Positions 3,038-62,010 are shown, counted from the stretch's first letter. The stretch is DNA of 64,000 nucleotides from Lepidodermella squamata (GCA_047495785.1 JBLDXI010000013.1:2914001-2978000); one strand, 5' to 3'. Numbers and translations: made by a program. The notes: a model not told the origin generated them from the sequence alone.

Positions 3038-6009
3038 ATAATGAAAGTCTCGCCATCAAAAAAATCCTCCTTAATTTTTCACCTGCTTTTTTGATACACG
3101 TGTCAATTTTCCAACACCATTTTTGCTTTAATGATAATTTATGTCGGAACAATTTCTTTGTTGTTTTGTGCCATTTTTCGTTTGTGCCGCGCGTGATAAC
3201 TTCTCATTGAAAAAAATGTCAAAAATTGGCATTTAAATATATTAAATAATGTGATGTTTTATCATTTATTGCTATTATTATTATTATTTTTATTTGTATG
3301 AAACTGTCAGCACACACACGAGAGTCAATGCGTTTTTACATTTATTATTTGAAAAGAATGAACAACCGCGGTATCTCTCCATCATTGTTTCATTTTTACG
3401 CATTCACCTCCACTGATACTACGTATTTAATGACCGTTTGAAAACAATACTGTGTTCTCGTAAAAATTGTTACAGCATTTTGGACAATAAAAATGTGTTC
3501 AATTGTGCTAATTTTATACCGCCTTTTATTCTTAGGTGACTAATATACCAGGATTTTTTTCCTGAATATTCCCCAGCGCTGTAATCGCGAAAGCCGCAGA
3601 TATCACAAGGTACGTGAGGGGTCCACCTTAATTTTATCGCGCGAGACGAGTGACGCTAAATTGGCTACTGAGCTGATTTAGAAAATTAGCTAGAAATACA
3701 CCTAAAATCATCATCGAGTACACAGGGAATAAAATTACGGGAAATTTGTTGACTCTAGCTTTGGAAAAAAATTAATTACGAAGCTGAATAGGGCCTTACA
3801 ATTGCATTCCTATCAATCTAGGAAAACAAGTGACACCTCTTTTCATGAAAGTGCCTCTTTTCTCTAGGTATTATATTCAATTATAAATTAAAGGGCCCGT
3901 GTTTACTTTTCAGGCGTGAATGAGAAACACGCAGGATTTTTTTCTCACATATACCTGCGATTTTCTTTCTATTACATATTTTGCACCAGTGATAATAGCA
4001 GATGATTGCCCTTAGCATCGCCCCGTCGGTGATGTATCGACCGGGCGCTGATTGCTGATAGCTGACTGTCTGTTAAGTGATTTATTGTTGTTATTGCTAG
4101 GTTATTACTACGGCTGCTGTTCGCAACGCAACGTCAGGGGGCGTTTCAGTAAATGGCTTCTAGGATAGTAGCTGTGTTTACGCACTGTTATACTATAAGC
4201 TAAACACTCCAAGACCAAGGGCAATCGGTTGTTTAGACTACCTACCGACATTTCAGCCGCCCGTCACCTCTCGTTTAGTTTACAATGATCTATTGAGCTG
4301 CGGGCGCCAATCGGTTTGCATTATTACAATTAGACGGTGCGAATGATTGGCCGCTGCCGATTTCGGTGATATGATACTCGAGTGCGATGAGCCCCGAAAC
4401 GATAACCCTGAAACGCTGAGTTCATGTTTACGCAATTAACACAACAGCGCCGCGCCCGTTCAACCGATTATCCCAGCGTAAAAATAGCGATTTTTCAAAC
4501 TCGATATTTATATTATGAGTACTATCTACTACTCCACAACTGACTACAGCAACATAGCGAAAAATGTTCATAATAATAATACATTATTTTCTATGCGGTA
4601 GTGATTATTGAAAAATAACGAATTGTTCTATACTTACTATTTACCTCGCAGCGTGATTGTTCTTAGTGCGTCTTTGCCTTTTGTTATTTTCCCATCATCT
4701 TTGTTTGCCTGCAGCCCATAGCGCATCTATCCGGCAGTATTATACACATACTTGTGGTTTTTTCCCCTCACACCTTGTCATCCGTCTCGAGGACCAGCGT
4801 TAAAAAAAACATCCCTAAGGCGGATAATGACCAACAAATCATTTGACCTTTTCTTTCATCACTCAAGTCATTATTAGGTAGTAATAAATAGCGTGCGTTT
4901 AAAATCGCGCGTGGGGCCGGCCTCGTGATGGCCTCGAGCACACATGTTTGAATAAACGACGGTGGGCTAAATGTCAAACTAGCATGCTATAATATATCTC
5001 GCAAAGCCGTCATCATCATTATCATCAAGGCCACGTGTATAAATTTGCACTAGAAGTTTTATTTTAAAACAAATCCGGATAATTTTTAGCGGTTTAGTGA
5101 AGGCGGTGTTTTCTCGCGCGTCAACAGGTTATCTGAGACTCGAGACCAAATTTATGCGCTTATCCCCGTCGCCGCCGCCCTGTTTTTTTTCGCCGTAGAT
5201 CCCCGGAAAAATAAATTATTATACCTTGTACAACTGCATCGTCTTTTGTACAACCACGCGCGTGTGCTGTATGAAAATGTGCCGTTTTTCGTTGCGGTGT
5301 GTCATCGTTATCATCCTTGAGGCATGCGCGTGTTTGTGCACCCGAGTGTAGGCATGCTTTTCGATGTATAACTTGCCGAACGCAGAAAACAAATACCTTA
5401 TATAAAAAAGATGACTTTTTACTCTCGCTCCTTCTCTTGTCTTCATACAAGTTATGATGCCATGTTATTTTTACCCGGCCTTTTTACGAAACGCCTATTA
5501 GACTGAACACGTGCGCGGGGAATACCGGTGGTTGTAGTCTTACTATAAAACGCGGGTCCCGTTATAAATAACATATTCGAGCTATCCCCCACAAGTAAGT
5601 GCGAGTAGTAGTATATAGCCAAATATTATCAAAAGGGCCGAGCCCCAGTGAGACTCGCTTGGTCTGCTTGGGACAATATAACGAAACGCTTTGTTATATC
5701 GCCTTTATTTTTCGGCAAAGCGGTGAAAAAGCGAGTTACGCCGGAAGTCTCATCACAATAGAGACTGGACATTGCAAAAACCAGCTTCATTAGAGCCAAC
5801 GTTTTTCCGCCTTAATTTTACTAAGCCTGACTTGGTACAAGAGAGGCAAATAACACTTTTATTTATTTATTTATTTACCGTTTCCTACGATCCAGCAAAT
5901 GTGTCTCTCCCCTTGATTATAGGTCGTTTTCGGTTTATTATTAAGTCATATTTATAATATGTGACGTGCTTCGGAAAAAGGAAGTCGAAACCTTTTCTCG
6001 TTTTGAAAA

Positions 6010-30269: not shown

Positions 30270-32416
30270 ATGTACGGTCTTCTGATAAAAGCCGCCCTGG
30301 CTTACTTGGGGCAGGCGTATCCAGATATAAGCCAAGACGTACTGGAAGAACTCGGCCTGAGTGACCAGCGTGACATGGACCAGTTTCAGATGTACAGTGA
30401 TAAGATCTTCACCCGAATGGCCAAGCTGCTGGCCGATAAGACCGGCGAGCCTGAAGACCACCTTATGGAAGGATTCGGTGGCTATGCCATCGATTTCATG
30501 TGCAAGGTCGGCTACCAGGATTTGCTTTTCAGCCTCGGCCGATCGCTGAGCGACCTCCTTAATGAACTCGACAACCTGCACGAGTATATTCGGATGTCTT
30601 ACCCAAAAATCAAAGCGCCAAGCTTTATTTGCTTGAAGGAATCAGTCGACGGCATCACGCTGCTCTACCGAAGCAAGCGTAAAGGCTTCCAGACCTACGT
30701 CATCGGTTTTTTGAAGACACTGGCAAATAAATTCTACGCAACATCGACAAGTATCGAAATATCGACCACAAGAGACATGGGCGATCGGCATGAGGCGGTC
30801 TACCGGTTGTTTTTCGACAACTCGACCCGCTATTCATCGGCAGCTGACGTCATCATGCGAGATGTTTACTTTAAAAACAAAGTAATTCTGGCGGATACGA
30901 TTTTCGAAATCTACCCGTTTCACATTCTGATCAATGACACGATGGAAATTCAATCTGTCGGCCAGGGTTTGAAGCACTTGTATTCAAAAATTCTACGCGA
31001 AGATTTTTCGTCGCTATTCGAAATTGCCCGCCCTAATGTTGAGCCGAATTTCCGTACGATTCAACATCATTTGAACAATATTTTCGAGATAAGTTGCTTG
31101 CTGACCCCTCGCGGTGGTATGAACGATGAGCCCCAGCAGGGTGCTGGCGGGAATAAGCGGGCGTTGACGGGCCCTCAAGAATCATTAGGCGTCGCAGGGA
31201 AAAGTATGGACAACAACATGATGAAAACCAATGACAGCAACGTTTCGAACGAAGCTGACCTAATTTTGAAGGGTCAAATGATTTTTGTGAGTTTTAATGA
31301 GTTTGACCTAGAAAACCAACGCAATTATTATTTTACAGATTGAAGAATGGAACTGTTTGCTCTTCATCGGCTTTCCTATGTTGGTTGTTCCCGAGCAAAT
31401 GCTTCGAGTTGGCCTTTATGTATCAGATTTGAGTTTGTTCGATTCATCACGTGATTTGATCATGGTTGCGAGTCAAGACATGAGTGACAAAAATCTTACC
31501 CAGGTTTTATTAGTTTGACCTATATAGTTTTTATGCGAATTTTCTTCTCTTTAGAAATTGCTGTCGGTAAAATCTGATGTTGTCGCTGAGGCTTCGCATA
31601 TCACTGAAAAAACCAAGGAAGACTGGCAACGAATTCACTACGCCCTACTACCGTCCACAGTCGCCCAGAAAATGATGCGAGGTGAGCCAACCTAATAAAT
31701 TGAAAAATTTAATTAATTTGATTCAAATTTAATTTTTTAGGTGAACCAGCTTATGCATTGGCTACAACCTTCCCGCGAGCTACAGTAATCTGCGTTGAAG
31801 TCATCGACGAACGATTCGACTCGTTGCTCGGTGAAGTTTTCTCTCACATCGAAGATATTCACCGTGATGCGGCGACAATTTGCGCGAAATACGATTTCTA
31901 TAAGGTGGATGGCCGTTTGACGGAATTCATGATGCTCTGCGGCGCTCCTGATGCCATTTCCAAGGCTGAAATATCCGCCTGCGTTGGGGCACTCGCCTTG
32001 GTAGCTAATGCCAAGCCAGCGCTGAGAGTTGGAATCGCTACCGGCCCGATTTCGGCAGGGGTTGTAGGCGTGAAACTGCTCGCTTACAAGTAATGACCAC
32101 TTCACAAATTTAAGAGTCCAATCCCATTTAATTTTAAACAGGCCTTTCGGCGATACAGTAAAAAATTCCAGACATTTGTCCAACCGCTGCGATCCAAGAA
32201 AAGTGTTGGTTGACGAGGCTACGATGAATGCGTGCTCGAACGACCCCGGGCTAATCTTCGAAGCAGCGTCTGCAGACAAGCAACAGGTGAAATTCGTGAA
32301 TTTAATCGTAAATCACAAAATTTCATAATTTTTCTAAATAGCTACCGCCTCAAATGGTGTGCTATTTTGCGAAGAAGGCATCGAAGCACAGCAGCAAACC
32401 CAAAGACGGAGCTTGA
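30270..32416 (+). CDS. Atypical soluble guanylyl cyclase-like protein (H-NOX, PAS/HNOBA, coiled coil, degenerate cyclase); exons 30270-31286, 31339-31503, 31555-31681, 31741-32089, 32142-32286, 32342-32416
   Basis: MYGLL start, LDNLHEY heme His, YRSKR (YxSxR), LKGQMIF, GLYVSDLSLFDSSRDL, ALLP, RVGIATGPISAGVVG, FGDTV. TATA at about 30210. Confidence 0.88.
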
Positions 32417-32536
32417 GAGACTCTGATGAGGACCTGATCATCCTTGAAAGACAGAATTATATCGTGCAATTATTGTAAAAATGTTCAAGTTGAAGTAAAG
32501 CTTTTGTGCTGTTAATATCCTTCGGACCCAAAATGC

Positions 32537-32932
32537 AAAAACAGGCTCCAAGTGGTTGATATTTTTTGATAAATTCGACAACCACTTGGGAGCCGTTCGA
32601 TTTGGGCCCTCGGGGCAACATGTCCAACCCTTGGCGCTCGGGGGAGAGCGATAGCAGGGCTGCTGCGGACATGCTGAACCACCGGGTGGTTGAGGGCGGG
32701 AGACTGAGGCCTTGAAAGGTTCAGCCGAATTCAGCGAAGTAAGCATGAATTTTCGAAGTAAGCTACATTTTGCGCCAGGATCGAAGGCTGAACCAATCCG
32801 TTACCCACGGGTTACCATGGGACGGATCGGGAGCCTCCGACGGTGTACAGACACCACCTGGCGTCGGCCGAAACAACAGCGTTGGAACTGCTGCTTTAGC
32901 GCTTGACGACATGTGTTGATGTGTCAGACTCC
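32537..32932 (-). ncRNA. Structured ~396-nt Pol III-type ncRNA candidate (possibly 7SK-like)
   Basis: TATATAAA about 30 nt upstream, 5' GGA start, many helices whose G-U wobbles work only on the minus strand, and a terminal hairpin followed by TTTTT. No credible ORF. Confidence 0.6.
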
Positions 32933-32958
32933 GAAAGAAAAGAGGCAAAAACGCCACG

Positions 32959-32966
32959 TTTATATA
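32959..32966 (-). promoter_or_regulatory. TATA box of the candidate ncRNA
   Basis: TATATAAA on the minus strand, followed by a pyrimidine-rich spacer and then GGAG. Confidence 0.5.
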
Positions 32967-33683
32967 GAGAAGGGGTATGAATCATTTAGCGCGATATTGA
33001 TTGTATTAGCCTTTATCAACTGAAAGAGCGTAGAACGTCGCGTGACGGTTGATAACATCAAATGATGCAATATTGCGGTCATAGAAAAGTTCTTACTAAT
33101 TCGATTCCATATTATCATACTTCGAGCGCCCTTTCTAGATTTAGTCTCGTTAAATAATTAAATAAAAATAATTTCCAGCATGGGCGTTTGGCCATATGGA
33201 TCTTTCACTGACCATTAATTATTTGATAATGCCCCTCTGACGCATTTTTGAAAAAAATTATTTTGGTATCCAGGTAGGGTCATTTCAACTAGACAGAAAA
33301 GTTTCGTTTTTTATCTAGCGAATATTCGAGCGAACTTCAAGAGGCTAATAGGAATCCCAGGACCTTGGCACCTTCAGGCACGTTCTACCTCTCAGATCTA
33401 CCAGATACAAGACTACCAGTAAATTGTTACAGAGCTGCTTCAGCTTTCATATAGGCTAATGCAAGAAAAGGGTGTGGCGTTAATTTAACCGATTAAGCTC
33501 ATATTATTTCGCGCACTTAACTTTCTAATCTCCTCATTTCCGGGGTCACCTTTTTGCACGAATGAGACGGGAACAGTTCGGAACACGGAACCAGGCCCGC
33601 CTGATAAGAAGAAACTCATACGAGTCATTCTTTCACCACATCCTCTTTTTTGGAATTAATTATTACACAATAACTTTGTGAAA

Positions 33684-34602
33684 ATGTACAAGCTAGCAGC
33701 TATTGTTGTTTTCGCCAGCTTCAGCCTGGCTGTTGCATTTCAACCCATCAAAACATGCGAAGAGACAGGTGGAGTGTGCGCCAATGATGGAGAGTGCTGC
33801 CCTGGCCTGTACTGTTACTCAGCAACAGGTCTGTCCATCACAAACCATGTTTTAGGACTATAGAAAAACTCTTCTTCATGAGATTCTCATCTTTTAAGGT
33901 GGATTTTCCGACATCCCAATTTTCACACCCGCCAAAATTAAATTAATTTGGGAGACTATTGAACCTTATAAATGCTGGTTTTCATAAACAATTGTTTGAT
34001 CAATTCTGAGTTGTCCAAGACTTCGAGTTTTGGGTAAATTTCCGAGTTTAAATGTTTTAAATCGATGAAATCAAAATGAATAGGTTTAGCAAAAGTCATC
34101 AATCTAAATTTTGATAAATGAAAAATAAGGTCAAAATGCTTATGCCCTATTTATGTCCGATTCATTAAGACTTCAGTGCCAAGAATCGAAGAGATGTTGT
34201 AGCCCGTTAACTTTTACAACCTACGAAATCTAAAAAACCTGTTATTTGATTCTAACAGGTAAATGTAAAAGGAAGTGCATAGCTGGTATGTTCGGTTGCT
34301 TCGACGGCCACGAATCGAAATGCAACGAAGCTGGCGGTCAATGCCAAGCGAACAGCAATTGCTGCCCTGGATTGTTCTGCAACCCCGAGAATAAGTTATG
34401 TAAGAGGAAATGCGAAACTGGCCTTCTGGGATGCGACGATGGCCATGAAACGCAGCAATGTCGCGAAACGGATGGTGAATGCAGCAATGACGGAGATTGC
34501 TGTCCTGGTTTGTTTTGCAACAGTGAAAATGGACGCTGCAAGAGAAAGTGTGTTGCTGGTATGTTTGGCTGCAATGACGGCCATGACGCCACCAGGCCGT
34601 GA
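33684..34602 (+). CDS. Secreted protein with three tandem knottin/ICK-like 8-Cys repeats; exons 33684-33828, 34259-34602
   Basis: Signal peptide MYKLAAIVVFASFSLAVA, then 3x C-x6-C-x5-CC-PGL-x-C-x6-C-KRK-C-x2-G-x2-GC-x-DGH. A phase-1 GT-AG intron joins the two ORFs. Confidence 0.85.
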
Positions 34603-35112
34603 ATTTAATATAGCCTGAACCCTGACAGCTTGCTTGATTTGATTTTAAAATTAGTGTTGACCCAAATAATCATGCTGAATAAAATTTCAAATTTCGGTAC
34701 CAGCTTTCTTTTTAGTCCTCTAGAACAGAGTATGAAGTCCAAGGAATCTGGCTGATATTGCGCCAATATTATACAAAGACCGGTTCTCCAAGGTGATAGT
34801 GCCACGTCCGGATTTAGCTAAAATTCGTAACGTGCCTTGAAAATTTAAATTAGAACGCAGAATCCAAAGCCAGGTTTCACACGTGCTCTATACAAATGGT
34901 GCCAAGGAAAATTAGTTTGAATTTTGTCTTAAATTGAAGATCAAAATGGAACCTTTTATTCGTGAAATGAATGGCGTATGAGGACGCAGCTGAATGAAAG
35001 AGAACGTGGATGAAAAAACTTGATCCTGAAAACAGTCACCATCTGCTCCTACCTTGCTATATAACGCGGCAATAAAACCTCAGTTGACAAACATAACTTC
35101 AAAACCTGAAAA

Positions 35113-36776
35113 ATGATTGCATATCTAATTGTTCCAGCAGTTTCTTTCATCGTGTTATTCTGGATATATCGAAAATATGTTCGACATCGCTACTTCGAGA
35201 GGTTAGGAATTCCAGGACCTACGCCTCACTGGCTGTATGGGAATATGGCCGAACTTCTAAGCAGTAGAGATCGAATGAAAATACCAGAATGGACCCGGAA
35301 ACATGGCAAAATGTACGGCATCTACGAGGGAGCACTGCCAATTTTGGTCATCAGCAGCCCTGAATTGATTGAACAAGTTACTGTCAAGGAGTTTTGGAAT
35401 TTTCAGGGCCATCGAGTCGGCCCATTTCAAGTATGTGCACCTTATTTCTGATAGATATAATCCAAGCTAAAATTCGAATTTTAGCCTGACCCCGAAACTG
35501 ATATGGGCACCAAGGATTCATTATTCGCCGTCGACGTGTTTTTCGCGTGGCGAGATCACTGGAAGCGTCTGCGGAACAAACTCAGCTCAGCTTTCACCAT
35601 GGCAAAGATCAAGAGTTACCACCCTCAAATGCAAGGCGGTCAGAATGAACTGTTGGAATTTATCGCTAAAACCGAAGGCTCTGAATTCAACATTCAAACG
35701 CTGTTCGCTCGATTCACGATATCAGTCATCGCCGGGATGGCGTTCGGTCTCGACTTGAGCGGCTTGGTTAGCGGCAAAAGTAAGCAAGGCGAAAGGGTCC
35801 TGGACCTTGCGATGGACATGTTTGCCTTCTTCCAAAACAAGCCAGCCCTCCTTCGAATGGCATTTTACCTAACTGAACTAGCCAGACCCTTGAAATGGCT
35901 ACTAGAATTCCAGACCAAGCTTATACCACTTGGCCCTATGGTCCCGTGGCTCAAGCTCCGAGAGCTGTGTAAAGAAGTCGTGAAATTTCGCAAGGAAAAT
36001 CCAAATCTGCGGCGAAACGATGTTCTGCAGTCTCTTCTTGATGATTCAGCCCTGAATCCTAATGCAAAGCTAGAGGACGAGCCTTTAACAGAAGATGAAG
36101 TCCTAATTCAAAGCATGGTCCTCCTCGTTGCTGGAACTGAAACAACATCGACTTGCCTAAGTTTCACTAGCTATTTGCTAGCTTCGAATCAACAAGCTCA
36201 AGACAAACTATACGCTGAAATCATCTCCGCTTTCCCACAAGGAACCGACAATATCGATGCGGAGAAATTATTCTCGCTGCCTTATCTTGATTGCGTCATC
36301 AAAGAGTCTTTAAGGCTGTATCCGATCGCGTACACTACAAATCGCTATGTCCTAGAAGACACCCAGCTCGGCGGAATTCCGCTGAAGAAAAAGTTTGGAT
36401 TAGTTCTGGCTGACATCTATTCAATGCACCACGACCCAGAATACTGGGGCAAAGACGCGGAAAAGTTCGTTCCGGAACGCTTTCTACCCGAAAACTCGAT
36501 AGATAGGCATGATGCTGCGTATATGCCATTCGGCTATGGGCCCAGAATTTGCGTCGGTAAGACTACAAATTCTTATTTTGATAATTGAGAAAATTTGATA
36601 ATTTTGCAGGAATGCGACTGGCCATGTATGAGCTGAAACTTACGCTGGTGAATATTATCAGAAAGTTCCGACTGGTCGAGCCAGAAGGCGGCTATCCGAA
36701 GACAGGCCTTCCGATAGCTGTTGAAATGGTCCTGGCTCCCGCGAATGGTGTACCCATTCGGGCTCTTAGAAGATGA
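35113..36776 (+). CDS. Cytochrome P450, CYP3 clan; exons 35113-35430, 35485-36556, 36610-36776
   Basis: N-terminal anchor, GIPGP hinge, WKRLR, AGTETT, ESLR, PERF, and heme motif PFGYGPRICVGMR across an intron. TATA at about 35058. Confidence 0.93.
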
Positions 36777-36910
36777 AAAACACTCTTTATGATTCGCATG
36801 ATAATTAAAACCAGTAGACTAAAATATATAGCTTTTATTGCACGTCGTTTCGAAATCAGTCACAATTTCATCATCAGGTGAAATGAGTTGGCATGTAAAC
36901 GGAGTTTTTC

Positions 36911-37165
36911 AGAAAATATAAGTCATAGGAATAGATATAATTCAGTAATTTCAATGTGGTTTTTAGATATAACGCCCACGAGAAATGGATGCCAAGGGCC
37001 CCAAATGGCCTAATGATTCATCAGCGGCTTAGTGGCCTCAAATTTCCGAAATTTGCGCCACTAAGCCGTTGATAAATCATTAGGCCATTTGGGGCCCTTG
37101 GCATCCCTTTTCTCGCGAGCAGGCGATCTTTAGTGAATTATATCAATACATATGACTTATTTTCT
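36911..37165. mobile_element. Foldback/MITE-like nested inverted repeat
   Basis: Inner near-perfect palindrome 36979-37115 (ggatgccaagggccccaaatggcctaatgatt...aatcattaggccatttggggcccttggcatcc). Outer imperfect inverted repeats ataagtcata...gatataattca and tgaattatatc...tatgacttat. Confidence 0.7.
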
Positions 37166-37766
37166 ATGAGATAAGTAGACCATTAAAGGTGGATATTTCC
37201 AACATCAGGTGTGAAGTTCAGCAATGACTCAAGAACTCCTCATTCAAAACAAAGCTGCAATAAGCTTGCTTTTCGTCATTCTCAGCGTCGAAATACTAGT
37301 AGAACTCATGGTAGAACTAGCACAAACCAGCATTCCGCCATTGCTACATATCAACGCTTTGAATAGACACTTGAGGGAACTGGATATCGCTGACTTGTAC
37401 GCAGCCAGTGTCGAATCCAACGCATGGTTCTTTCGAAAAACTGCCGTATACTCTAACTGCACAACAGCCAAACCGTAAAATGTCTGAAAGCCGAAAGAAA
37501 AGTATCACGCAGTTCTTTTGAATATGAGGTTTCTCGAGATCGCGCTTTCTCGGCATCGGTTGCAGTGCCAGTCAATCGCATAGAAGAATGGCATAGGCAT
37601 CATCGATGTTTCGGAGAGACACGAGAGAGAAATTGTAATTGTTGATCTTTTAACAAGACCAGTTCAGCGAGTCAAAATTATTGCTTAACTAATAGCTCAT
37701 TCAGTTTTCGCCCAGGCGGTGAGTTACTGAATGAACATCCGAAGTAAGCAAATATTTTGGAGGGCG

Positions 37767-37839
37767 ATTCCTACGGAGGATTCGAACCTCCCACTGTGTT
37801 CAACGATGAACACCGCTCTACCAACTGAGCTAGTAGGAA
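37767..37839 (-). ncRNA. tRNA-like cloverleaf with non-canonical anticodon arm (not a standard tRNA)
   Basis: TTCCTAC-TA-GCTC-AGTTGGTA-GAGC-G-GTGTT-CATCGTTG-AACAC-AGTG-GGAGG-TTCGAAT-CCTCC-GTAGGAA. All four stems pair perfectly and the A and B boxes are intact, but the anticodon loop has 8 nt and no U33. Confidence 0.8.
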
Positions 37840-38256
37840 AATGGCTGCTAAGCAGCAAATTCACGTCACAGTGAAAATTGCTAGCCTGAGCAGCAAAGAA
37901 TGAGAAAAAATGAGCGTATTTATACGGCCTTAGGCTCACCTATAAATAATTCAGACGACTGATGCAATTTTATTCAAAAGGTTGCTTAGTGCGGAGGTGA
38001 GGATTCATTATCAATTCAACGTTAAAAAATGAAACGTCAATACTGAATAACTAAGAAGATCAACCTATTGTTCTCAGTGTGAAAAGAAAAGAAAGAAAAA
38101 ATTCAATAAATAACAATGCCAAATCCAAGTCAGCAAAAGATGATTCCATTCCGTCCTGTTCTCACTTAATTTTTTGAATAACAGTTCAAGCTCAAATTAA
38201 TAATAGGTACCTTATATTGCAATTAGTCGCTTTGAGGCATTATTAGACATCTTGAA

Positions 38257-44329: not shown

Positions 44330-45031
44330 TTGATGCGGACAAAAGAAATCGACGAATAATATACTCAGATTGTAAACATCCCCGCGATATGTCTCTTTGT
44401 ATTTCTACTGATTAATCGGCGATTGACGGAAAAATTTGAATAATAACCACCGGGGAAGTGGCACAGTCCAGAACCCGAGCTATAATGATAGCCTCCTCTC
44501 TAATTACCGGCAATCAGCATAATTTTTTGGCGCGATTGCGCATCTTTTTTTTGGTGTATAATTTTTGGTGCGCGCCAAGTTATAAAGCGGAACAAATAAA
44601 AATAATTCTGATATGAGCTGGAAGGGATATGAAATAAATAATGTCCCATTTATGAGACCTTTCAATTTTGTGAATTTGACATGCGGGAGTCGAGAAAGTT
44701 TTTCTCAAATTAAAGTAAAATGAGTAAAATTTATTTAGTAAAAAAATGATGGCGTAGAACCTAAAGAAATTAGGTTCTACGCGCGTCTCGGTTTCTAGGT
44801 TAAACGAGAAGAGGTGGGATAACAGAAAGGATGAGGCTGTTAGACCGTGATTTTATCGCATGATAAGGCTGCGAACGTCTCGCCCGGCTTTGTGCTCATC
44901 TCGCACCTTTTCGCACAGCAATTGAGTTGCGCAATCTCGACCAACCGCGCCCATGGTGGGCCTATAAAAAGAAATCTTGTACCACAAATCTCCTTCACTG
45001 CGATTTTGAATTTCAACTGAATTTTATTTCA

Positions 45032-58929: not shown

Positions 58930-59128
58930 TCGCGACTTCCGCGCCAGAACAGTGTGCCGGAAATAGAAACAAATCGCGTAAAACTAACTTTTTGCATCTT
59001 CGCCAAGTCAGTCCAGTCGCGTGCCTGATTGCTGGAAAAAAAGTTTAACGCCAGTTTTTTCTGCGCATCAAATACATTACGCCATTTGTTTCTATTTCCG
59101 GCACACTGTTCTGGCGCGGAAGTCGCGA
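58930..59128. mobile_element. MITE-like element with 45-bp perfect inverted repeats
   Basis: tcgcgacttccgcgccagaacagtgtgccggaaatagaaacaaat (58930-58974) and its exact reverse complement at 59084-59128. Confidence 0.75.
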
Positions 59129-59283: not shown

Positions 59284-62010
59284 TTACACGTCTTGTATGA
59301 TGCTTCTGCTTTTAGAGGCCCGATCTCTAGAAAAAAGTATCTCGTCAGCTTGGGCCAAAACTTTCTGCAAGTATAATTCGGCCGTAGTTTTGTTCATTGT
59401 TGTACCAACTGCAGATTGTAAACGGCGCTCTCCCGATCGCTCGGTCTCCGGCTGAACCTGATTATGCTTCTTCTTTAGGTATTTCGGGTATACGTACAAA
59501 GCGAAGACAACGAAGAAAACGACTATTAAGATGGCACCATTGCACAAGCCAATGATAATGTTAGTGATATTGCCTGATTCAGCCGCAGCTGCATTCGATT
59601 CAGCGGAGTTGATCTTCGTCGTTCCTGATGATTGAGGTGCAAACCCGTCCTCTAACTCGCATGACTTAGTCTGCGGTAGACAGGTTGCGAAGGACAAAGG
59701 CGCGTCTATCTCTGCTAGCATCAGCGACAGAACGTCCGTTTCGTCCATAAACGACTTGAAGTCAGCCTGCGAAATTAGGGCCGAATCCGCCGCCCGCTTA
59801 CTCCTCACGTTGATCATCCCGCCAGCTTGGCAGAATCTCTGCGTTGCAATTTGGTTCAGCGTATAAGTCACTCGAAAGCAGCAACCTGGTGCGTTTTTCG
59901 ATGTGTTCGCGAAGTTTGAGTCAATGATGTCATCAATCGAGACGTATGGGATATTCGCTGGCTTTGAATACATGTAACCAGGGCAACATGTTGCAAAATT
60001 AGACGAGCTGCTTTCGCACATCCCTGTTAATTTCGTGGCGATAGCTTTCTTTATTTTCAGCCGATAGTTAAAGTAGGTGTCCAATGTAATGACAGGCTTT
60101 ATCAACAAATCGAAGCTCGATCTTCGTTCCCTAATTGTACTTCCACATCGAGGCGTATCTGGGTTCGAGCATTGTTGATACTCTTTGGTGCCGTTTTTTA
60201 TCATTCGCCATTGGATACCAAGACCGCATCTAGATGAGCATTTTGACCAAGCCCGGGACAAAGTCACAGCGGAGCTGAGCCAGGTAGAAAGATAGCGGTC
60301 GCCGACCACTAATTTCTCAGGAGTAAGAGTGGAATCTGCAAGCTCAAGCAGGTTTCTTGTTCCCGCGTTAGTCTCGGTAGAATTTCCGACTTTTGTGGAT
60401 GGATCTTTAACGTTATTAACTGTTGACGATTTTGCAGAGGTTGACAAAGTAGCTGCGCTGGTTGGAAGTACTGTTGATTTGACCGAAGCAGACGTTGACA
60501 TTACATGCAACATGGACAATGAGTTGAATGCTGTCGGTCGATTCGGTTCTGAATAAGGTGAACTGCTAGAAACAATGTTTGAAGCAGCGACCGTCGTCTT
60601 GATCGGAGTTGTTGATGAAAAACCATTCGGCTCAGAAGATTTTAACATCTGCGACAACGTTGTTTCAGCAGAAGAAGCTGAGATAGATTGGGAAACGGCA
60701 GAAGTCGAGGGCAGCTTTGACCAAGTTGTTGCCGATATTTCTCCGATGACAGTAGGCAGCAATTCAATAGGTGATGTATTCAACGTTGTTAATTGAGCCT
60801 CAAAATGAGGAGATGATGAGCTCGGAGCTGTATCGGCTGAAGTTTCGTAAGGGATTACCGTCGTAGTCTGATCCGAGGATATCTCACCATTTTGAGTTAT
60901 CCCTACATAGATTAATGATGCTGCGTCGGCTTTACTTTCAGAACCTGTGGACATTTCTAATCCCTTTGTTATTGAGCTTAGTTCAAACCCCAGACTAGAC
61001 GTTCCATTGGACAATGAACCTTCGTCCGATGAATATGATGTAGCGTAATCCAGTGTCGATGAAGCTTCCGTGATGATTGATGTTTCGTCAAGTATCGATT
61101 GATCTGACGTTTTGCTTAGCATTGTATCCGGACTGGTTTCATTCGCAGATGGATCCGTTGAAAAGCCAGTTTCCTCAATGGTTTGCTCTGGCGAACTGTC
61201 TGCTGCCACGTCGGTTGTAGTCTGCTCATTTGTGGCTTCCTTCAGCATTGATGTTAATATTGCTGGCACCGAAACTTCCTCCTCGATGGTAGAAGCACTG
61301 AGCTCTTCAACAGTTCCAGTGGATACCCTTGGGGCTGTTTCGGTGATAGTCTCTTGCGATGTCGGTGACGTGTATTGAAAATTAGACGAAATAAAAGTGA
61401 TTTCAAGTTCGGATTCGGTTGCGTCTGAAGTAGGGTAAGTATATCCATCCTGCACTGTTCCGAGGCTTGAAATGCTCGGCGTTGTCTCAATGGCTGAAAC
61501 TGTAGATTCCACTGCAGTCATCAAGGAGGTGCAATTCTGGTCGAAAGATGAGTTCGAAATCGCAATCCAACACGGACCATGAAGCAAGTCATCGCTGCCA
61601 CCAGCTGGAGGGCACGGTTCAACCAGCTCTGGACGATCGTTAGTGTCACTCCAAATCGCACAATTAGCTGGACAAGGGTCCCTCCAATACCATGAAGCTG
61701 CCGAGTTCCAGAGGAAACAACCAGTGTTAGCCAGCGTGATATTGAAGCATGAAGATATGTCATGCGTAGCAGTGTCGTTGTTCCAGACGTAACATAGTCC
61801 TATTTATTCATGCAATTTCATCTGAGGTTATTTGTACATGTTACTTTAGCTTTGCGGCTTACCGGAGTAGTAATCTAAAGTCCATTCATTTCTGACGCAT
61901 GTCTCTTGCCAAGATGGAGCGTTTGACTTGGGGCTCCATTGGAAGCACCCGTTTTGCGCTGATACCGACATTATAGTCGTTATCATCAAAAGGCTTGACA
62001 TATACAACAT
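59284..62010 (-). CDS. Type-I membrane protein, array member F (about 2-3 degenerate Trp/Cys repeats plus acidic mucin stalk); exons 62010-61863, 61799-59284
   Basis: MLYMSSLLMITTIMSVSAQNGCFQW... exon spliced through a GT-AG intron into the long ORF. Shared module with RSKR, and TM. Confidence 0.85.

Follow-up and report, generated by a model that had tools for sequence, protein, structure and literature searches.

On its minus strand the window, by which we mean the whole 64-kb stretch of Lepidodermella squamata DNA analysed, carries two structured loci, RNA1 and RNA2, that share a short sequence motif. The features of RNA1 are the following.

32537 to 32945, minus strand: RNA1, a highly structured orphan RNA of ~400 nt, ending in a long hairpin and a T5 run (32537-32541)
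32959 to 32966, minus strand: TATA box TATATAAA upstream of RNA1, read in the sequence and aligned with its counterparts in the paralogs RNA3 and RNA4 described below
32745 to 32772, minus strand: motif copy a, CAAAAU-GUA-GCUUACUUCG-AAAA-UUCAU, core at 32754-32763, in a predicted single-stranded linker after a Y-shaped domain
32728 to 32751, minus strand: hairpin of motif copy b, stem AAUUCA..UGAAUU, with the core GCUUACUUCG (32735-32744) in and around a predicted 7-nt loop
32615 to 32711, minus strand: conserved 3′ domain of RNA1 (GCCUCAG, CCGCCC and the long hairpin), its pairing kept in the alignment with RNA3 and RNA4

The predicted fold of RNA1 has an MFE of -171 kcal/mol and a z-score of -9.1, compared with -5.5 for the plus strand, and in a structure scan of the whole window the RNA1 windows were second only to one palindrome. 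An Rfam search of RNA1 matched no family. Counted from the inferred 5′ end of this RNA, the motif begins after about 180 nt. The second locus, RNA2, is built around a structure that resembles a tRNA.

37674 to 37915, minus strand: RNA2, a locus of ~240 nt around a tRNA mimic, z-score of the whole-locus fold -6.2
37917 to 37924, minus strand: TATA box TATAAATA of RNA2, placed 78 nt before the 5′ end (37839) of the tRNA-like part
37844 to 37894, minus strand: 5′ hairpin of RNA2, about 20 bp, z -4.0
37766 to 37839, minus strand: tRNA mimic with perfect acceptor, D and T arms and consensus A and B boxes, cloverleaf z -4.1
37731 to 37759, minus strand: motif module of RNA2, CAAAAU-AUUU-GCUUACUUCG-GAUG-UUCAU, core at 37740-37749, read in the sequence
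37674 to 37735, minus strand: 3′ hairpin UUCAUUCAGU/ACUGAAUGAG, tail AGUUAAGCAAUAAUUUU and a T4 run (37674-37677), z of the 3′ domain -4.0

Each of the RNA2 subdomains thus folds with a z-score of about -4, and 46 nt upstream of the RNA2 TATA box there is a nearly reversed octamer, AAATTGCAT. As a cloverleaf the tRNA core has a 7-bp acceptor stem, a 4-bp D stem and a 5-bp T stem, with the B box GGTTCGAATCC. The anticodon arm offers an 8-nt loop at best, or closes as a 7-bp stem with a tetraloop, and ARAGORN reported no normal anticodon in the mimic. The best Rfam match to it is tRNA-Sec at 21.5 bits, which is below threshold, and the Rfam tRNA thresholds are not reached. The first T4 run lies ~90-95 nt downstream of the mimic, compared with 1-6 nt in five of the six real tRNA genes of this genome that were checked, the sixth being without a T run. 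Having no 7-nt anticodon loop with U33, no readable anticodon and no adjacent terminator, the RNA2 core was rejected as an ordinary decoding tRNA. RNA1 terminates in T5 and RNA2 in T4, and the 3′ end of RNA2 is uncertain because its T4 run is weaker than the T5-T6 terminators of the bona fide Pol III genes in this genome. The motif lies about 150 nt into RNA2.

Exact copies of GCTTACTTCG occur three times on the minus strand of the window, at 32754-32763, 32735-32744 and 37740-37749, two within RNA1 and one within RNA2, and a repeat search of the window groups the three into one family. Re-reading these copies agreed with the coordinates and sequence first given for the motif. Copy a of RNA1 (32772-32745, minus strand) reads CAAAAT GTA GCTTACTTCG AAAA TTCAT and the RNA2 copy (37759-37731, minus strand) reads CAAAAT ATTT GCTTACTTCG GATG TTCAT, with the CAAAAT and TTCAT flanks common to both. 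The original prediction counted 21 identical positions between them; the sharing holds, and the count in our alignment is 23 of 29 columns. A plain local alignment of RNA1 with RNA2 is only moderately unusual, with a score of 26 where shuffled sequences average 18.5 (sd 2.4). Genome-wide, in 121 Mb, the 10-mer GCTTACTTCG has 163 occurrences, whose flanks are random. The gapped form CAAAAT-N3/4-GCTTACTTCG is found at three loci, two of which are RNA1 and RNA2, 5 kb apart and on one strand; the reversed pattern, used as the control, gave one match. A genome search had been proposed as a check on the motif, and it shows the motif to be rare, with two of the three gapped loci strongly structured and the third not, this third locus and a looser fourth being unstructured with z-scores of about 0. 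The genome-wide counts are decisive that the motif is shared by more than chance. The motif was not found as an array with a 19-nt period.

RNA1 has two diverged paralogs elsewhere on contig C13, RNA3 and RNA4, both newly found here. RNA3 was taken from the genome list of GCTTACTTCG sites, and RNA4 from a BLAST search with RNA3 as query. Aligned over 458 columns, RNA1 and RNA3 share 55% identity, and the longest blocks that they keep identical are GCTTACTTCG, CTTACTTCG, TGGCGCAA and GCCTCAG. Only RNA1 and RNA2 had gone into defining the motif, ahead of the comparison with RNA3, and the chance of two pre-specified blocks staying identical is about 0.55^19, or 1e-5. In copy a, CUUACUUCG is invariant across RNA1, RNA3 and RNA4. 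In copy b the core of RNA3 is identical to that of RNA1, and RNA4 has one substitution, inside the loop. Overall the 9-10-nt core is exact in five of the six full copies, with flanks that have diverged by 40% or more; the CAAAAU flank and the AUUUU(G) of the plus strand are not kept in RNA3 and RNA4. The suggestion that the motif marks an RNA family is borne out: of the blocks conserved between RNA1 and RNA3, its paralog at 55% identity, the motif is the longest.

Conservation extends to the promoter, the fold and the end of the transcript. The TATA boxes align across the three RNAs, and all three have a terminal hairpin and a U run, RNA3 and RNA4 ending in T4 only. In the alignment of the 3′ domain 97% of cells pair, against 31-43% with the partners slid, and the domain holds three compensatory pairs and several one-sided changes compatible with G.U pairing. 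A covariance model of this domain, searched against the genome, matched the three family members only. All of this conservation is seen among paralogs in a single genome, and at 94% identity RNA3 and RNA4 count effectively as one lineage, leaving two that are independent. Judged by this conservation, RNA1, RNA3 and RNA4 are a real RNA family, new and read from the minus strand. It is also conceivable that the locus has no RNA function, being made of decaying repeats or of a protein-binding or recombination site at the DNA level, with the structure incidental. The sequencing runs that hold the locus are one DNA-like run and one metagenome contig only, the family is found on one contig only, the segment with the motif has been duplicated repeatedly and a palindromic repeat lies in the neighbourhood, as such a reading would have it. 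However, compensatory and G.U-compatible changes keep the helices between 55%-identical paralogs, the fold z-scores are extreme, the TATA boxes, terminal hairpin and U run are kept in three paralogs, and every stem is kept in the tRNA mimic; we regard a lack of RNA function as quite improbable.

The minus strand is fixed because the tRNA mimic and the conserved helices that contain G.U pairs work on that strand only. This bears on a plus-strand reading put forward earlier, in which the loci would encode short spliced-leader-type RNAs with a donor, CGAA/GUAAGC, followed by an Sm-like AUUUUG. The Sm site consensus is RAU4-6GR and the donor is normally AG/GU. All three window copies do read as donor plus AUUUUG, and CGAA/GU also occurs in a spliced leader (SL)-like gene of the rDNA spacer. 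On the plus strand, however, the perfect cloverleaf is lost and the conserved G.U pairs become A.C, and the TATA box, terminal hairpin and T run all belong to the minus strand. The donor-like reading, confined to the plus strand, would lie about 200 nt inside a structured region with no short 5′ exon, and only AUUUU is constant in the window copies, the AUUUU(G) being lost in RNA3 and RNA4. There is no multi-copy array, RNA1 and RNA2 being single copy or part of a three-member family. With the strand fixed, the copy number low and an SL-like gene located elsewhere, we abandoned the spliced-leader reading as extremely unlikely. The SL-like gene itself is part of the spacer repeat of the rDNA, was present in all the rDNA repeats examined, and has an Sm site, a hairpin and a T run; its CGAA followed by GU adjoins a fixed LINE insertion site.

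Folding suggests how the motif may be presented. Both a multi-branch domain before the motif and a UUCA/UGAA helix after it are predicted, in line with the original prediction, as is the display of RNA1 copy b by the AAUUCA/UGAAUU stem, for which the local fold has an energy of -4.7 kcal/mol and a loop of UUACUUC. A 7-nt hairpin loop holding UUAC is predicted in copy b of RNA1, RNA3 and RNA4 and in RNA2, on stems that differ in sequence, and these hairpins are weak, at -1.4 to -4.7 kcal/mol. In RNA2 a hairpin with the loop CUUACUU is a local folding option, and in the MFE structure of the 3′ domain the motif is paired with the 3′ tail and not displayed in a loop. The 3′ half of RNA1 copy a is predicted to be able to pair with the RNA1 5′ end.

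An additional copy of the motif segment, partial and inverted, is present in RNA3 and RNA4. In the inverted fragments beside them the copy-b core alone is kept perfectly, including a matched T/A change in RNA4, and some 260 nt downstream of RNA3 and RNA4 there is a perfect complement of this core that co-varies with it. It is possible that the motif is shared by descent only, on a segment prone to local duplication, and that a structural role in each RNA or recent copying, rather than a common trans-acting partner, accounts for its conservation. Fragments of the segment have indeed been duplicated in three arrangements (in tandem, inverted, and 5 kb away in RNA2), the motif can pair in cis with the 3′ tail of RNA2 or the 5′ end of RNA1, and gene conversion can explain the matched change in the RNA4 inverted repeat. 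What this leaves aside is a core that stays exact in nearly all full copies across 55%-identical paralogs with strongly diverged flanks, and a single structural role fails to explain the kept letters because the cis partners differ between the RNAs. Descent alone is in our judgement unlikely, and the segment shared by RNA1 and RNA2 probably arose by local copying.

Perfect inverted repeats of 19-20 bp surround the motif in RNA3 and RNA4, and they are one of several points in favour of small-RNA precursors that share a seed. Here cuts by RNase P and RNase Z would free hairpins, with GCUUACUUCG-N4-UUCAU inside a ~22-nt product. RNA2 has a suitable hairpin-tRNA-hairpin layout and a ~25-bp imperfect 3′ hairpin with the motif in its 5′ arm, and the alternation of conserved, variable and conserved sequence is like that of a miRNA family. 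However, neither RNA1 copy lies within a long duplex, and the Rfam miRNA matches are weak, hairpin-based and at another place, which makes this reading very doubtful.

The sequence CUUAC complements GUAAG, and the motif could act in trans as an antisense or kissing element, directed at 5′ splice sites of the type CGAA/GUAAGC (U1-like, or at an SL donor) or at another RNA loop. The CGAA followed by GU in the rDNA-spacer gene and the co-varying complement of copy b downstream of RNA3 and RNA4 would both suit such a role. Searches of U6, RNase P, MRP, 5S, the rDNA unit and the SL-like spacer gene gave no complementary target of the motif beyond chance, and duplex energies of the 10-mer with the tested RNAs and a second spacer site were no better than those of shuffled 10-mers (p 0.1-0.99). 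The motif is internal and not 5′-terminal, RNA1 contains no Sm site, and CGAA misfits the usual AG/GU donor. The antisense or U1-like guide of the original prediction found no support here, and we find a trans-acting antisense or kissing element quite unlikely. U1 snRNA itself, which has ACUUACCUG at its 5′ end, four stem-loops and an Sm site, was rejected, with no Rfam match either at gathering score or at E up to 10.

Other known RNA classes were compared with the two loci. The 12 U6 genes, RNase P and MRP of this genome share ATATGCAAATGAG 46-47 nt upstream of the TATA box, and no ATATGCAAATGAG-like element is present upstream of the RNA1 and RNA2 TATA boxes; with the TATA box present and this element absent, a type-3 Pol III gene of this kind was rejected. 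RNase P and MRP RNAs were also rejected, as neither RF00009 nor RF00030 matched in the window; each has a single clear match elsewhere in the genome, at 119.6 bits (C32) and 86.1 bits (C1) respectively. The telomere repeat here is TTAGGG, for which a 5-repeat probe matches at 590 places, the end of this contig among them. Telomerase RNA, whose template should complement more than one such repeat, was set aside, the longest CCCTAA-type word being 6 nt in RNA1 and shorter than that in RNA2. The Rfam 7SK models gave no match to the window at E up to 10. 7SK RNA has paired GAUC motifs in its 5′ hairpin, and a 3′ hairpin; RNA1 has two GAUC words, which its predicted fold does not pair together. A CUGA, the D-box sequence, follows copy b, and a box C/D snoRNA was rejected with the C box, RUGAUGA, absent in both RNA1 and RNA2.

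We propose that RNA1, RNA3 and RNA4 form a lineage-restricted family of TATA-preceded, highly structured non-coding RNAs of ~420-450 nt. Their most conserved element is a tandem pair of (G/A)CUUACUUCG, with the second copy predicted to be presented in a 7-nt hairpin loop on a stem whose sequence differs among the paralogs. RNA2, a neighbouring and apparently Pol III-type RNA, carries the same element and its flanks in a ~95-nt 3′ extension of a non-decoding tRNA mimic, and may bring the same site into a tRNA-processing context. The loop would be a putative recognition site for one trans-acting partner, a factor that these RNAs may bind, scaffold or titrate. The putative partner would probably be a sequence-specific RNA-binding protein, a complementary RNA loop being less likely. 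Taken as a whole, this explanation, a lineage-restricted family whose loop motif is a putative recognition site shared with RNA2, is one on which we are evenly divided. The two-component RNA system first suggested is not supported as an obligate one: the sequence sampled on either side of RNA3 and RNA4 contains neither an RNA2-like nor a tRNA-like gene.

A more specific role for the loop, which we consider very unlikely, would make use of its sequence. The conserved loop, seven nucleotides (C-U-UAC-U/A-U) closed by about 5 bp, may act as an anticodon stem-loop mimic, its likeness being to that of tRNA-Val(UAC), or may display the codon UAC (Tyr). If true, RNA2 would be a tRNA body with a sealed anticodon arm and its anticodon-like loop moved to a separate hairpin, and the RNA1 family would carry such a loop on a large scaffold. 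Both would then either bind or titrate a factor that recognises the anticodon loops of tRNAs, or make kissing contacts with the anticodon of a tRNA, a regulatory principle in an animal akin to bacterial T-box RNAs or tRNA-mimic decoys.

The broader reading, in which the loop is a recognition site shared by RNA2 and the RNA1 family, can be set beside known systems. The motif resembles the U1 5′ end in containing CUUAC, the complement of the 5′ splice-site GUAAG, but unlike U1 it is internal and repeated, with no U1 fold, no adjacent Sm site and an exon-side complement of CGAA in place of CAG or AAG. BC1 and BC200 are exapted, single-copy regulatory Pol III RNAs derived from a tRNA or a SINE. 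RNA2 is similar in being single copy, with a tRNA-derived 5′ core whose A and B boxes are intact, a TATA box upstream and, ahead of the terminator, a structured 3′ domain that is unique to it. Where the tRNA part of BC1 refolds as a hairpin, that of RNA2 remains a perfect cloverleaf, and RNA2 differs further in its extra 5′ hairpin, in having no A-rich central region and in a 3′-domain motif common to an unrelated, larger RNA family. In the TMERs of murine gammaherpesvirus 68 and in MALAT1/mascRNA, tRNA-like units act as processing signals. RNA2 likewise joins a non-decoding tRNA-like structure to hairpins in one transcript, and therefore cuts by RNase P and RNase Z could free the flanking parts; in contrast to these examples it is a cellular invertebrate locus with hairpins on both sides. 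The RNA1 family has no sequence or model match to the scaffold and sponge RNAs 7SK, Y RNA, vault RNA and bacterial CsrB/RsmZ, in which a short loop motif recurs for the sake of one protein, and the type-3 upstream element is missing, but it is like them in being compact, structured and possibly a Pol III product, and in repeating a short conserved sequence that is displayed in hairpin loops while the surrounding stems vary.

The motif originally spotted by eye is present in both loci as described, with CAAAAT and TTCAT flanks placed around a common core on the minus strand. In RNA1 the module reads CAAAAT GTA GCTTACTTCG AAAA TTCAT (32772-32745), and a second GCTTACTTCG follows it directly (32744-32735, also minus); we refer to these as copies a and b. 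The single module of RNA2 reads CAAAAT ATTT GCTTACTTCG GATG TTCAT (minus strand, 37759-37731), and 23 of the 29 aligned columns are identical between the two RNAs. Taken by itself, the local alignment of RNA1 and RNA2 is only moderately unusual. The four loci that enter the analysis, the first two in window coordinates and the others on the same contig (C13), are as follows.

32537-32945, minus strand: RNA1, candidate structured RNA of ~400 nt with motif copies a and b
37674-37915, minus strand: RNA2, candidate RNA of ~240 nt built around a tRNA mimic, with one motif copy
C13:3007839-3008339, plus strand: RNA3, RNA1 paralog, found through the genome 10-mer list and then by alignment with RNA1
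C13:3881474-3881949, minus strand: RNA4, RNA1 paralog, found by BLAST with RNA3, to which it is 94% identical

The genome comprises 121 Mb in 151 contigs, the window being C13:2914001-2978000. The 10-mer GCTTACTTCG occurs at 163 sites in 242 Mb (both strands), with unrelated flanks, so that three copies on one strand within 5 kb would be expected only ~1e-3 times per whole genome. The gapped form CAAAAT-N3/4-GCTTACTTCG was found at three loci genome-wide against one for a reversed control pattern. The third gapped locus (on contig C31) and a looser fourth (on C34) are set in sequence without structure (z ~0) and have the look of chance matches. No structure and no related flanks were seen at these sites or at the 10-mer pairs on C11, C26 and C28. 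A 20-base form of the motif gave three matches in a metagenome scan, all unrelated chance ones, and a search of the published literature returned unrelated sequences only, such as primers.

An inverted pair of 10-mers on C13, noticed in the genome-wide list, revealed RNA3, whose surroundings align with RNA1 over its full length, from the TATA box through the terminal hairpin. BLAST of the genome with RNA1 missed both paralogs. RNA3 is strongly structured (z -4.8) and shares 55% identity with RNA1 over 458 columns, the longest identical blocks being GCTTACTTCG (copy b), CTTACTTCG (copy a), TGGCGCAA and GCCTCAG. Since RNA1 and RNA2 alone had served to define the motif, at a time when RNA3 had yet to be found, its conservation here is an independent test; the chance of two pre-specified blocks, 19 positions in total, surviving at 55% identity is ~1e-5. 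The consensus structure of the 3' domain is also retained, with 97% of cells able to pair against 31-43% when the partners are slid, and it contains three compensatory pairs along with several substitutions that create or remove a G.U pair. These G.U pairs would be A.C mismatches on the opposite strand, which places RNA1 too on the minus strand; G.U counts on folds of single sequences do not separate the strands, whereas the paralog alignment does. A covariance model of the 3' domain recovered exactly RNA1, RNA3 and RNA4 from the genome. All of this conservation is between paralogs within one genome and amounts effectively to two lineages. Homology between RNA3 and RNA4 continues upstream past the TATA box for 140 nt or more, and the duplicated unit was therefore larger than the RNA. 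The proposal that the motif marks an RNA family is thus borne out for RNA1, RNA3 and RNA4; the existence of this family, with the motif as its key conserved element, is well supported.

The CAAAAU flank has been lost in RNA3 and RNA4, whereas the core CUUACUUCG is retained. In the predicted folds of RNA1 and RNA2 the motif lies between a multi-branch domain on its 5' side and a UUCA/UGAA helix on its 3' side, and copy b of RNA1 sits in the loop of an AAUUCA/UGAAUU stem, all as first proposed. In each of the four RNAs an element of the copy-b type is predicted to form a local hairpin with a 7-nt loop; the loop is constant while the stems vary.

Predicted hairpins displaying the copy-b type element
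RNA1: loop UUACUUC, stem AAUUCA-GC
RNA2: loop CUUACUU, stem AAUAUUUG/CGGAUGUU
RNA3: loop CUUACUU, stem UUUCG/CGAAA
RNA4: loop CUUACAU, stem GAAUUUCG/CGAAAUUU

These hairpins are weak (-1.4 to -4.7 kcal/mol), copy a lies outside any hairpin, and in the minimum-energy fold of RNA2 the motif is paired with the 3' tail rather than looped. It is possible that the motif is common by descent and serves cis structure only, a reading we consider unlikely. RNA3 and RNA4 each also have an inverted partial copy of the motif segment ~260 nt downstream, in which copy a has decayed and the 19-20-nt copy-b core is a perfect complement; in RNA4 the inverted copy carries a matched T-to-A / A-to-T change relative to copy b. 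Pairing within a read-through transcript, a convergent transcript bearing that hairpin, or gene conversion acting on the two repeats would each account for this pattern. That the loci are instead precursors of small RNAs with a common seed has, in our estimation, a slim likelihood.

RNA1 has a predicted fold of -171 kcal/mol with a z of -9.1 (plus strand, -5.5) and was second only to one palindrome in a fold scan of the whole window. RNA2 has a z of -6.2, and the 5' hairpin, the tRNA mimic and the 3' domain taken separately each reach ~-4. The core of RNA2 forms a perfect cloverleaf in which the A and B boxes match the consensus but the anticodon arm is sealed; this places RNA2 on the minus strand. 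Real tRNA genes of this genome meet a T5-T6 run within a few nucleotides (five of the six examined); in RNA2 the tRNA mimic is followed by ~90 nt of structured trailer and then a T4 run. RNA1 ends in a long hairpin and T5, and in RNA1 and RNA2 alike a TATA box precedes the structured part by 25-30 nt. Type-3 Pol III promoters in the genome (U6 on C3 and C12, RNase P on C32, MRP on C1) have (A/C)ATATGCAAAT(G/T)AG in common, placed 46-47 nt before a TATA-like box. RNA1 and RNA2 lack the ATATGCAAATGAG element found ahead of the TATA box in the U6, RNase P and MRP genes and are therefore not standard type-3 Pol III genes; their putative transcript ends and polymerase are read from sequence features. 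The TATA regions of RNA1 and RNA2 do not resemble each other significantly (p 0.18), and a pattern derived from them gave 11 genome sites against 17 for a control, the remaining sites being without structure downstream. We see little likelihood that the loci lack RNA function altogether. The genome has at least 31 near-identical copies of U6 itself, which cluster on C12 and C29 and frequently adjoin tRNA genes.

The original prediction also envisaged a two-component RNA system, which the paralogs do not support. No tRNA-like or RNA2-like sequence was found 2-12 kb upstream or within ~1.5 kb downstream of RNA3, or from 5.5 kb downstream to 4 kb upstream of RNA4, and RNA2 is single copy in the genome. 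On this evidence RNA2 seems to be a gene of its own that picked up the motif segment, and not an obligate partner. Duplex prediction between the whole RNA1 and RNA2 was no better than for shuffles. The suggestion that the motif is an antisense or kissing guide fared similarly, as duplexes of the 10-mer with candidate targets were like those of shuffled 10-mers, both for the spliced-leader (SL)-like gene described below (p 0.14) and for U6, RNase P, MRP, 5S and the rDNA unit; we regard a guide function as quite improbable.

Searches of Rfam at gathering and permissive thresholds returned nothing relevant for RNA1 or RNA2. Telomerase RNA was rejected, there being no template for TTAGGG, the telomere repeat of this genome, and no arraying of the 19-nt period; RNase P and MRP RNAs are both matched elsewhere in the genome, no 7SK model matched, and the C box of box C/D RNAs is absent. 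A U1-like role, raised from the complementarity of CUUAC to the 5' splice site, fails on the internal position of the motif and the lack of an Sm site in RNA1. The strand, copy number and anatomy of the loci contradict SL-type RNAs on the plus strand, which we consider extremely improbable, and the bdelloid spliced leader (sequence in PMC3795323) is absent from this genome. The 8.46-kb rDNA repeat (C2:2905400-2914100) does hold an SL-RNA-like small gene with an Sm-like AAUUUUG, a GC hairpin and a T7 run, and its spacer has a 5S rRNA gene on the opposite strand.

4394-4520 of C2:2905400-2914100: 5S rRNA gene
5158-5292 of C2:2905400-2914100: SL-RNA-like gene

Three longer rDNA repeats on C27 have insertions of 0.9-2.6 kb at one spot of the SL-like gene (unit positions 5199-5224), and in two of these units a further insertion lies in the 28S region, at about unit position 3590. 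The insertions in the SL-like gene are LINE insertions with target-site duplications, directly after CGAA|GU, a curious match to the leaders ending in CGAA that had been suggested as something to look for.

The window has metazoan genes, for an RPGRIP1-like protein, a TRP channel, soluble guanylate cyclase, a P450 and TSP1-repeat receptors. Three tandem repeats of 135-138 nt (34246-34602, plus strand), situated between RNA1 and the P450 gene, encode a cysteine-rich, knottin-like module, and between the P450 gene and RNA2 lies a near-perfect nested palindrome (36909-37169). Its 54-nt arms are 94% complementary around a 20-nt loop and are enclosed by 40-nt arms that are 83% complementary; at -117 kcal/mol per 150-nt window on either strand it is the most extreme fold of the window, and may be a MITE or foldback element, or the source of a long-hairpin RNA. 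Other strong fold z-scores, at 58951-59100 (minus, -10), 60601-60750 (plus, -8) and 44701-44850 (plus, -7), are noisy because just eight shuffles were used; these segments are located within or close to the array of TSP1-receptor genes and downstream of the gene for the TRP channel. The run holding the locus (read layout 5,701 letters) is DNA-like, with uniform cover and no transcript ends. A 268-nt contig from a metagenomic run is ~91% identical over 32400-32637, spanning the end of the guanylate-cyclase gene (CDS end 32478) and the RNA1 terminal hairpin, and the species' own run has the same variants at 32492 and 32513; a second haplotype or close strain therefore exists, and this contig could supply covariation data for the hairpin. 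No close relatives were found in protein or metagenome collections; the best relatives of the neighbouring P450 and guanylate-cyclase proteins are 47% and 37% identical, and non-syntenic.

We propose that the element would be a recognition site presented in a hairpin loop to one trans-acting partner, a site apparently repeated on a scaffold RNA and also carried by a tRNA-mimic RNA. The reading as a whole, of a family with the motif as its key conserved element and a loop recognition site for one partner, we hold to be evenly poised. A protein is the more likely partner, ahead of an RNA, given the sharp 9-10-nt edges of the conserved block and the failure to find a complementary target. Should the loop bind a single factor, these RNAs would offer a direct handle on a lineage-specific RNP and could reveal how local copying spreads a recognition element among RNA genes that are otherwise unrelated.

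What began as a motif seen by eye has led to a verifiable, structure-conserving family of three paralogs and to a tRNA-mimic RNA with the same element. To our knowledge the ncRNA catalogues of rotifers and their relatives are almost empty. None of RNA1, RNA2, RNA3 and RNA4 matches any Rfam model, and neither they nor the motif are described in the published literature or Rfam searched. On sequence grounds, we regard the RNA1 family as a putative structured small RNA that is specific to its lineage and repeats a loop motif, and RNA2 as an exapted tRNA-derived RNA in which a tRNA gene appears to have been rebuilt as a non-decoding module with a long, putatively functional trailer.
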